From contig OZ004607.1 of the NCBI GenBank assembly GCA_963924565.1, forward strand, positions 32,984,001 through 33,048,000: a stretch of DNA of 64,000 nucleotides. The letters are read 5' to 3'. The notes beneath the pieces were generated by a model that was not told the origin of the DNA, did no database searches, and saw only the letters and a list, made by a program, of their open reading frames with translations. The translations under genes and the position numbers were made by a program. Position 1 is the stretch's first letter, and the number at the start of each line of letters is the position of its first letter. The stretch comes from Ascidiella aspersa (lineage: Eukaryota). This document shows, one piece after another, positions 4,426 through 6,051 of the stretch.

Positions 4426-6051
4426 ATGTTTAGTAAGTCGACCCTGATTGCTGTGACTTTGGTAAGCTGTTCGTTTTGTGCGGTGGAGTGCGGATTGTTT
4501 TCCGGCATTGGCAAGGCATTAAAGAGGGTGGTAAAAGAAGTGGCGAAAGCACCGAAAGTTGTGGTTAAAACTGCTGAAAAAGTTGTGCGCGAAGCGGCTA
4601 AGGCACCTAAGGAAGTGGTTAAAACTGCTGAAAAAGTTGTGCGCGAAGCGGCTAAGGCACCTAAGGAAGTGGTTAAAACTGCTGAAAAAGTTGTGCGCGA
4701 AGCGGCTAAGGCACCTAAGGAAGTGGTTAAAACTGCTGAAACGGTTGTGCGCGAAGCGACTAAGGCACCTAAGGAAGTGGTTAAAACTGCTGAAAAAGTT
4801 GTGCGCGAAGCGGCTAAGGCACCTAAGGAAGTGGTTAAAACAGCTGAAAAAGTTGTAAAAGAAACTGCAAAGCTACCAAAAGAGGTTGCTAAAACAGCAG
4901 AAAAGGTAGTTCGAGAGGCTGCTAAGCTACCTGAAGAACTGGTTAAAGTTGTTGCCAAGACAATTCGACAGGTACCGAAAGCCATCGACAAAACAGTTCG
5001 AGAAATCGAGCGAATTGAAAAGCAACTGGACCGAGCAGTGGACGAGGTTATCAAACTACCGATGAAAATTGTCGAAGTTGCAGATCAGATAATTCCGATC
5101 CCAGGCGAAATCAAGAAGTTGGCGCGCGAAGTGGTTAGAGTAGAAGAACAAGTAAAGAACTTGGGCCAGAAAGTGCTGAGCATTCCAGACAGGATTGTGG
5201 AGGTTGTAAAGGACATTGTCCCGCTGCCAGAAGAAATCAAATCGTTGGCGGTGAAAGTATTCAAAATCTACAAAGTGATTCAGATGATCGATACTGGCTT
5301 CGGCGAGTTGGGAACCAACCTTGAAGCATTCGGGCAGCAGCTGAAACATTTACCGGAAAACTACGTGGAAGCGGTGGGCGAAAGACTGGCCAACATTCCG
5401 AACGTTTTCGAGGAGGCTGCCAAGGATTTATTGGATGTCCCGAACAGATTCAAGCAAGTCGGATCCGACCTGAGGAGCATCGAAAAAGGCGTGCGCAAAG
5501 TAAAAGCCGAGATGCTTAAACTACCCGGAAAGCTTAGCGAAAACGGAGACGAGCTCGGAAAGTTGCCGGAGCAGTTTTCTGGCGTTTTCGACGAGATGGA
5601 CAGCGTCAAGCGTCACGTGACCCAGCTGGAGAACGACATCTCCTCTGTTCCAGAGGCGCTAAAACTGAGCATCCGAAAATCCTCCTCCAGCCTCGAGAGT
5701 GCCTTAAAAGGAGTCCTCCGGCTTCCCGAGGACGCGCAAAAGTCCATGGATGATTTGTTGGAAGTCAAGAGTAAAATTGAGGAGATTGCGGGGGAAGTTT
5801 CTAGCCTTGAGGATGACGTCATTGAGGCGTTGGATGAGATCAGGGACTTACCCGCCAAGAAAGTCAAGGCCGCCGTCGAAGAAATTTCTGGAATGTCCAA
5901 GGAAATCGAAACTTCGGCGCGCGAGATCGGGGAATTCCCTGAACGAGTGAAAGAGGTGGTTGAGGAAATCGCGGATTTTCCTGAAAAAATAAATCAAGCT
6001 GTTGAAGAAATATTTGAAGCCCCCAAAACAGATACAAAGGATGAACTATAA
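4426..6051 (+). CDS. Intronless signal-peptide, amphipathic helical-repeat protein with C-terminal KDEL, copy A (541 aa; uncharacterised)
   Basis: gccATG at 4426. Hydrophobic signal peptide MFSKSTLIAVTLVSCSFCAVEC. Seven 18-aa repeats, an acidic Pro-punctuated C-terminal half, and ...TKDEL stop. AATAAA at ~6100. GC-richer than the flanks. ORF intact in all three copies. Confidence 0.93.
   Translation: MFSKSTLIAVTLVSCSFCAVECGLFSGIGKALKRVVKEVAKAPKVVVKTAEKVVREAAKAPKEVVKTAEKVVREAAKAPKEVVKTAEKVVREAAKAPKEVVKTAETVVREATKAPKEVVKTAEKVVREAAKAPKEVVKTAEKVVKETAKLPKEVAKTAEKVVREAAKLPEELVKVVAKTIRQVPKAIDKTVREIERIEKQLDRAVDEVIKLPMKIVEVADQIIPIPGEIKKLAREVVRVEEQVKNLGQKVLSIPDRIVEVVKDIVPLPEEIKSLAVKVFKIYKVIQMIDTGFGELGTNLEAFGQQLKHLPENYVEAVGERLANIPNVFEEAAKDLLDVPNRFKQVGSDLRSIEKGVRKVKAEMLKLPGKLSENGDELGKLPEQFSGVFDEMDSVKRHVTQLENDISSVPEALKLSIRKSSSSLESALKGVLRLPEDAQKSMDDLLEVKSKIEEIAGEVSSLEDDVIEALDEIRDLPAKKVKAAVEEISGMSKEIETSAREIGEFPERVKEVVEEIADFPEKINQAVEEIFEAPKTDTKDEL
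4546..4923 (+). repeat. Coding 54-bp tandem repeat, 7 units (KAPKEVVKTAEKVVREAA)
   Basis: Directly visible at both DNA and protein level. Confidence 0.95.

Follow-up and report, generated by a model that had tools for sequence, protein, structure and literature searches.

In a 64,000-nucleotide stretch of Ascidiella aspersa DNA (contig OZ004607.1 of assembly GCA_963924565.1, positions 32,984,001 to 33,048,000; here called the window), we analysed a single-exon gene at 4426-6051 on the forward strand, the product of which, 541 amino acids (aa) long, is built from short amphipathic repeats. It was found that this is very probably a real protein-coding gene under selection. The best explanation of its product, which we put forward tentatively, is that it represents a tunicate family of repeat proteins that reside in the lumen of the endoplasmic reticulum (ER) and cover hydrophobic surfaces. 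The family is new and restricted in its taxonomic range, and its physical type is a familiar one. Four copies of the gene were found, three of them inside the window:

4411-6051, + strand: open reading frame (ORF) of copy A, first ATG at 4426, 541 aa, single exon
21320-22837, + strand: paralogue B, 505 aa, intact, ending in KDEL (ORF 21305-22837)
43877-45394, + strand: paralogue C, 505 aa, intact, ending in KDEL (ORF 43862-45394)
G000:C1:3456598-3457561, - strand: copy D, a decayed fourth member on the same chromosome, 29.5 Mb away

A, B and C sit in three cassettes that belong to a large and uneven segmental triplication. Identity between the copies is 97.3-99.0% over the 1092 nt of the ORF outside the 18-aa repeats, 96.2-97.6% in the 3' flank and 90-95% in the 250 nt upstream. 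An earlier note on this DNA had described the gene as retained intact in three copies; all three are indeed intact and end in KDEL, but their near-identical flanks show that they are recent, so that intactness by itself proves little. The evidence of constraint comes instead from the ratio of non-synonymous to synonymous substitution (dN/dS), which was 0.22, 0.16 and 0.18 among the copies (Fisher p 1.4e-4 for A/B and 6e-6 for B/C). Between copy D and copy A the dN/dS was 0.21 at a dS of 0.39, and the family is therefore old enough for selection to have been long-lasting. No frameshift or stop codon occurs across the 3 x 1.5 kb of ORF, while indels are present in the flanks. In the contigs of three further DNA runs the ORF was again without indels, the flanks had many, and the base differences matched paralogues B and C.

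Copy D is damaged by a 35-bp deletion (corresponding to 5411-5445 of copy A) and by more indels near its 3' end; the repeat units of 18 and 14 residues described below are still recognisable in it. When the assembly (308.6 Mb in 75 contigs, with the window on a 41-Mb contig) was searched with the N-terminal module and the C-terminal half, no paralogue beyond the four copies was detected.

The coding sequence of copy A runs from 4426 to 6051 (+) with no intron-like break. Two flanking features are shared by the copies:

4189-4425, + strand: proximal upstream region common to the three copies; the homology of B to A begins at -237
6100-6105, + strand: AATAAA polyadenylation signal, 49 nt past the stop codon, at an equal offset in all three copies

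Only 2-3 positions differ among the copies in the last 120 nt before the ATG, and all of them have a good start context (GCC ATG T in copy A). An AG lying 5 nt before the ATG might conceivably serve as a trans-splice acceptor. The GC content of the ORF is 0.48, that of its surroundings is approximately 0.35, and the GC at third codon positions (GC3) is 0.50 in the ORF and 0.46 in a neighbouring N-acetyltransferase exon; such a composition is not unusual among exons in this genome. Horizontal transfer was rejected, as there is no bacterial homologue and the GC3 is close to that of the N-acetyltransferase exon. Four ORFs of at least 200 aa occur in the window, namely the three paralogues and one antisense shadow of the repeat array; coding on the minus strand was likewise rejected, since the repeat itself gives rise to the antisense ORF at 4365-5054. 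Where the conserved 3' flank of the ORF ends, at 7495-8009, there is a tandem array with a period of 33 bp and a self-identity of 94-97%.

Both ends of the protein carry sequences that suggest where it goes in the cell:

4426-4491, + strand: signal-peptide-like segment, residues 1-22, assigned by eye with the (-3,-1) rule
6019-6051, + strand: tail APKTDTKDEL and stop codon, with a KDEL retrieval signal identical in A, B and C

Soluble ER residents are classically recognised by such a signal-like N-terminus together with KDEL. Residues 1-22 comprise MFSK, a hydrophobic core of 16-17 residues, and AVEC followed by G, that is, a basic start and a small-residue cleavage motif, and the substitutions found in this segment among the paralogues preserve its hydrophobicity. 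Beyond it the chain is, by inspection, amphipathic rather than hydrophobic. At the other end, copies A, B and C all close with TDTKDEL directly before the stop codon, as expected of soluble ER residents. Cysteines are present at residues 15, 18 and 22 only, all within the signal-like segment, and no N-x-S/T sequon was found in the 541-aa protein. The KDEL terminus and the Cys-free mature chain noticed earlier are thus both borne out, the former in three of three copies; the signal peptide proposed at the same time fits in its hydrophobic core and AVEC motif, but was judged by inspection only. We consider that the product probably enters the secretory pathway, and, somewhat less firmly, that it is on balance an ER resident, a conclusion drawn from the two motifs alone, with the signal peptide recognised by eye.

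The mature chain can be divided as follows:

4492-4548, + strand: mature N-terminus, residues 23-41 (GLFSGIGKALKRVVKEVAK), a cationic amphipathic helix
4549-4926, + strand: seven 18-aa repeats, consensus APKEVVKTAEKVVREAAK, residues 42-167
4927-6018, + strand: twenty-six 14-aa units, residues 168-531
5056-5307, + strand: two duplicated blocks of 42 aa (3 x 14), residues 211-252 and 253-294, found by sequence inspection

Residues 23-41 have a hydrophobic moment (muH) of 0.68 and a net charge of +4, and form a degenerate first repeat unit; depending on whether this is counted, copy A has seven or eight 18-aa units. TRF reported the corresponding 54-nt tandem array at 4531-4947, with matches of up to 97%. 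On a helical wheel of the 18-mer, read directly, nine consecutive Ala/Val/Pro positions stand opposite nine positions of Lys/Arg/Glu/Thr, so each unit presents a Val/Ala face of 180 degrees and a Lys-rich polar face (muH 0.70), and the hydrophobicity spectrum of the region peaks at 3.60 residues. The number of 18-aa units differs between the copies, A having two more than B and C. In the following array the consensus of the 14-mer is [LVI]-P-E-x-[ILV]-x-E-[VAL]-[VA]-x-E-[IVL]-[IL]-x. A hydrophobic residue followed by Pro opens 16 of the 25 full-length units, the others hold the register without Pro, and there are only four register slips, all of them small. The hydrophobic period of this part is 3.50-3.54, corresponding to a double heptad. 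Both 42-aa blocks carry the motif hP-hP-[G/E]-E-I-K, in which h is a hydrophobic residue.

The regularity of the chain is most easily seen from its prolines, the successive spacings of which are 18 (seven times), 15, 28, 12, 2, 28, 12, 2, 42, 15, 14, 28, 14, 28, 25, 42, 29, 14 and 14. Over residues 168-541 the phase coherence of the prolines was 0.885 at a period of 14.00, a value that none of 20,000 random placements reached (p<5e-5). The residue preceding Pro is A, L, V, I or F in all 26 cases, against a background of 41% for these residues. The mean hydrophobic moment in windows of 18 residues was 0.55, compared with 0.23 +/- 0.018 in shuffled sequences, and the net charge by quarter, from the N- to the C-terminus, is +18, +1, -3 and -18. 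These measurements agree with the earlier description of the protein, which had named Lys-rich 18-aa repeats of five helical turns, prolines spaced by about 14 residues, an internal duplication of 42 aa (the two stretches of 23 aa quoted for it share 13 of 23 identities) and a charge running from basic to acidic.

The two kinds of unit proved to be related. When the 14-mers were aligned to the 18-mer, offset 0 gave a mean BLOSUM62 score of 11.7, while all other offsets gave 5.1 or less and the maximum of 1000 shuffles was -0.4. The 18-mer is therefore the 14-mer with four residues added at its C-terminal end, and the whole mature chain is one repeat family, comprising 34 related amphipathic helix units. 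Both unit lengths are whole numbers of helical turns (five for 18 residues, four for 14), which keeps the hydrophobic stripe in register along the entire chain. V, L, I, M and F make up 31% of the protein, and its Uversky hydropathy H of 0.464 lies on the folded side of the boundary at 0.415; it follows that the hydrophobic face must be buried against something.

To look for relatives, we performed searches by sequence, by profile and by fold. Word-based homology searches with the whole protein, with residues 169-541 and with the 18-mer domain alone gave no match. A phmmer search with the 352 aa outside the 18-aa repeats against 1.84 billion representative proteins yielded no confident relative; its 25 weak matches (best 1.4e-10, identities of 16-29%) are all repeat or coiled-coil proteins, among them a C-type-lectin repeat protein, chemoreceptors and phage tail proteins. 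The protein did not match itself in this library, and the source species is thus absent from it. In Pfam, NCBIfam and PHROGs, dozens of helical families appeared below threshold (among them SMC, Rad50, tape measure, MCP and BLOC-1); for Pfam, the whole protein and three parts of it were searched with E up to 10 and the best 25 matches were listed. The bacterial family DUF948 (PF06103) scored 37.4-41.2 bits against a cut-off of 37.2, a sum over two or three stretches of the whole protein, and fell to 15-27.5 bits, below the cut-off, when the parts were taken separately; as one of 50-100 equally weak helical families, it is treated as a compositional match. By sequence, the Protein Data Bank (PDB) returned designed helical bundles only, the ESM Atlas gave no usable match with two queries, and no description of such a protein was found in the literature. 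No full-length match to a characterised family emerged from phmmer, Pfam or PDB, only generic coiled-coil noise, and the protein remains as unrecognised as it had first appeared. Judged by these searches, it is a lineage-restricted tunicate family with no detectable relatives.

One of the closer likenesses is to a phage or bacterial protein of phage-tail-like type (P0009), which has 14-aa repeats of the form DLAPLPGxLxxLEx with a motif hP-hP-G/E-x-h-x-x-L. Similar stretches occur here at residues 223-236 and 265-278 (IPIPGEIKKLA and VPLPEEIKSLA). However, the match (E-value 1.8e-4) is confined to the repeats, and P0009 has neither signal peptide nor KDEL, carries other flanking domains and belongs to a tail-protein context; convergence is the most likely source of the likeness.

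The monomer prediction by AlphaFold2, which had been suggested as a check, was made from the single sequence and gave helix almost throughout. In the 18-mer domain the model has helices of 14-16 residues separated by turns of 2-4 residues, and in the 14-mer domain mostly long helices, several of them of about 40-50 residues. Foldseek with this low-confidence model returned designed repeats and F-BAR domains at TM scores of 0.1-0.28, which are meaningless.

Exchangeable apolipoproteins (apoA-I/A-IV/E and apoLp-III) are the known proteins that the present one most readily brings to mind. Like them it would follow the secretory pathway, it consists of tandem amphipathic helices, many of which open with Pro, it has units of whole turns that give one full-length hydrophobic stripe, and, with few or no Cys, its fold is not stabilised by disulphides. 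With 26 prolines each preceded by a hydrophobic residue, a mean moment of 0.55 and an all-helix model, it shows the proline-punctuated amphipathic helices of that class. Unlike them, it has units of 14 and 18 residues (3.5 and 3.6 per turn) in place of 11 and 22 (3.67), and its Lys residues lie at the centre of the charged face, not at the interface; KDEL predicts residence in the ER instead of secretion, and there is no homology. Helices of 3.67 residues per turn are also those with which synucleins and perilipins lie on lipid surfaces. The phase of the prolines was not significant at 11 or 22 residues (p 0.06 and 0.57), Apolipophorin-III (PF07464) scored 13.1-20.1 bits against a cut-off of 36.3, and the apolipoprotein A1/A4/E family (PF01442) scored 19.1 bits against a cut-off of 90, in the C-terminal third only, and was not among the top matches listed for the full protein. 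Membership of the apolipoprotein family was rejected on these scores and on the lack of an 11/22 period.

According to the explanation that we prefer, the product would be translocated into the ER, losing a signal peptide some 22 residues long, and the KDEL receptor would retrieve it from the Golgi, making it a soluble protein of the ER lumen. The Val/Ile/Leu/Ala stripe would be the working surface, covering another hydrophobic surface. When free, the protein may fold back on itself into a helical bundle that buries the stripe; at work, the stripe could lie on one leaflet of a membrane, on a lipid particle or on a luminal client with an exposed hydrophobic surface. Electrostatic attraction of the basic 18-mer domain (+18) to anionic lipid or to some acidic partner might hold the complex together, and its solubility would be maintained by the acidic C-terminal quarter (-18). 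The product would thus work like an exchangeable apolipoprotein or a holdase with no membership of those families. That it binds lipid or another hydrophobic surface, rather than only itself, is by analogy possible but doubtful.

Several results weigh against the preferred explanation. The periodicity of the large domain is 3.5, as in coiled coils, not the 3.67 of known lipid-surface helices, and a heptad body of this kind suits the packing of a coiled coil or a bundle no less well than a belt of the apolipoprotein type. The AlphaFold2 model is of low confidence (pLDDT 60, pTM 0.43). The old copy D has neither the signal-peptide region nor KDEL, and an ancient origin of these two features cannot therefore be shown. 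A motif search of the 400 nt upstream detected no ER stress response element (ERSE), unfolded protein response element (UPRE), heat shock element (HSE) or TATA motif. Finally, RNA-seq, proposed earlier as a check of expression, gave zero reads on all three copies in one run of the species, of which about 6% was read (7.8 M reads); the gene is thus not broadly and highly expressed as ER housekeeping chaperones are. The few RNA reads found nearby derive from dispersed repeats.

A more specific form of the explanation appears decidedly unlikely to hold in all its parts. In it the protein would be a tunicate-born, ER-luminal analogue of apolipoproteins or holdases that coats luminal lipid or hydrophobic cargo or escorts the EGF-repeat protein encoded approximately 2.7 kb downstream of the ORF and co-duplicated with it, and that arose de novo from one amplified unit of 14 residues, a later insertion of four residues having shifted the period from 3.5 to 3.6 per turn.

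Soluble residents of the ER lumen are otherwise mostly ancient and conserved; if the two targeting motifs act as usual, this one would be young and lineage-specific. Orphan repeat proteins are frequent in animal genomes. If the reading is true, the gene would be a tractable chordate case of new-gene birth under selection from one amplified 14-residue helix unit, and a natural example of how repeat length (14 versus 18) sets the geometry of an amphipathic stripe. Binding of lipid or clients, if true, would mean that the principle of apolipoproteins and holdases had been invented independently within the ER. If the gene is never expressed, it is a mere curiosity of repeat expansion.

The alternative that survives best, which we nevertheless regard as rather unlikely, is a self-associating scaffold. 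In it the 26 units of two heptads each would pack into an extended coiled coil or a bundle of several helices, either as a single molecule or as an oligomer, and the protein would serve in the lumen for spacing, as a matrix or for storage, instead of binding lipid or clients. The heptad period of 3.50-3.54, measured over residues 168-541, holds one register over approximately 364 residues, with hydrophobic residues at unit positions 1, 5, 8 and 12 as in a canonical coiled coil; the seam is wide, with hydrophobics at a, d and alternately e or b. The noise in the profile searches was all towards coiled-coil families, and the matches in PDB, by sequence and by fold, were designed helical bundles and helical repeats. 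Aculeate insect silks, which are secreted products of tandem intronless coiled-coil genes with a signal peptide and a long heptad helical domain, offer a parallel: here too there is a single-exon tandem cluster, a heptad domain with small and branched core residues, and restriction to one lineage. However, the silks have no KDEL and no regular proline punctuation, and there is no homology. The 17 prolines within the heptad array, being helix breakers, are unusual for canonical long coiled coils, and a scaffold leaves the separate basic 18-mer domain, with its period of 3.6, unexplained.

It is highly unlikely, in our view, that the ORF is unexpressed or dying, that is, a recently triplicated product of repeat expansion that looks like a gene and is out of use. 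The zero RNA reads of the single run are what one would see in such a case, the copies are young (flanks 96-97.6% identical), one family member, copy D, is already a pseudogene, and the searches found no homologues. Against this, every comparison gives a dN/dS near 0.2, even that with copy D at a dS of 0.39, three times 1.5 kb have been kept free of frameshifts and stops despite the indels of the flanks, and the three copies still have their signal peptide, KDEL and poly(A) signal.

Less probable again is a cationic membrane-active defence protein or its precursor, in which the Lys-rich N-terminal helices would be lytic and would be neutralised by the acidic C-terminal half as a pro-region, an arrangement found in many antimicrobial peptide precursors. 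The strongly amphipathic mature N-terminus (muH 0.68, net +4) and 18-mers (muH 0.70), the charge gradient, and the tandem duplication with a repeat number that varies between copies would suit such a role. KDEL, however, predicts that the protein is retained and not released; the repeats are not separated by processing sites, and the dibasic pairs are few and aperiodic; the chain is 519 aa long, with a conserved acidic to neutral domain of 364 aa under purifying selection; and the N-terminal module has no relative elsewhere in the genome.

A stress protectant of the ER lumen resembling late embryogenesis abundant (LEA) proteins, disordered in solution and helical on drying, freezing or contact with membranes, is a shade harder still to believe in. 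Group 3 LEA proteins are disordered, highly hydrophilic proteins built of 11-mer units, and some animal members have a signal peptide and an ER-retention tail; ER-targeted LEA proteins are known in bdelloid rotifers. The repetitive Lys/Glu/Ala-rich amphipathic units are alike, and weak matches to ApoLp-III, DUF948 and Phasin, as obtained here, are often seen for LEA-type sequences. The present protein, in contrast, is rich in Val, Ile and Leu, predicted to be folded and far more hydrophobic than hydrophilins, shows no 11-mer periodicity (proline phase p 0.06; spectrum 3.5-3.6, not 3.67), and has no stress-response elements in the 400 nt upstream. No LEA family was among the Pfam matches listed, and membership of group 3 (PF02987, LEA_4) was accordingly rejected together with the missing 11-residue period and the H of 0.464.

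The ER protein RAP/LRPAP1 (ending in HNEL) is similarly a soluble, Lys-rich, all-helical luminal protein with a retrieval signal of the KDEL type, but it is made of three three-helix-bundle domains with no short internal repeats. Least credible of all is that the product is a RAP-like escort chaperone for the co-duplicated EGF-repeat protein, its Lys-rich helices masking calcium-binding acidic modules in the ER: KDEL and Lys-rich helices recall RAP, ORF and EGF-repeat gene are co-oriented in each cassette and Sushi and EGF/cbEGF exons likewise come after copy D on its strand, yet a shared position within one segmental duplication is one event and not several, the gene beside D is only generically EGF-similar to that of the window, there is no similarity to RAP in sequence or fold, and the idea of a client would come from gene adjacency alone.

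The exons downstream of copy D, of Sushi/CCP and EGF/cbEGF type, lie at G000:C1:3451164-3454713(-) and loosely mirror the order of ORF and EGF-repeat gene in the window. A pairing with a Gla gene at copy D was considered and rejected, there being no Gla exon near it. In a genome search with Pfam Gla (PF00594), in which the best candidates only were scored, 10 exons were listed at E<=0.01, none of them in the window, including the interval 25809-25993. Arylamine N-acetyltransferase (PF00797) exons are present at 3308-3793(-) and 42732-43097(-), upstream of A and C, and at 61618-61974(-), near the end of the window. No such exon lies upstream of copy B, the homology of which to A starts 237 nt before the ATG.

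We also compared cassette A (75-20901) with 21083-34931 and 39102-57638. Its left part is like C (86-97%), and its right part is like B (95-97%, versus 74-80% to C). This mosaic points to a chimeric history, with unequal crossing-over or conversion, and not to simple serial duplication.

Elsewhere in the genome, a match to cellulose synthase of family GT2 (PF03552, PF13632) was seen at G000:C5:19610700-19611167, with a GH6 match 2.7 kb downstream on the same strand (region to 19614090, +); the combination of GT2 and GH6 is the signature of tunicate CesA and marks the genome as that of a tunicate. Within the window, elements of approximately 31 nt at 2843-2874, 2907-2938 and 6808-6838 were covered at depths from the thousands up to the tens of thousands in the DNA runs, and, as RNA reads match them only in part, they are probably the ends of a dispersed repeat.

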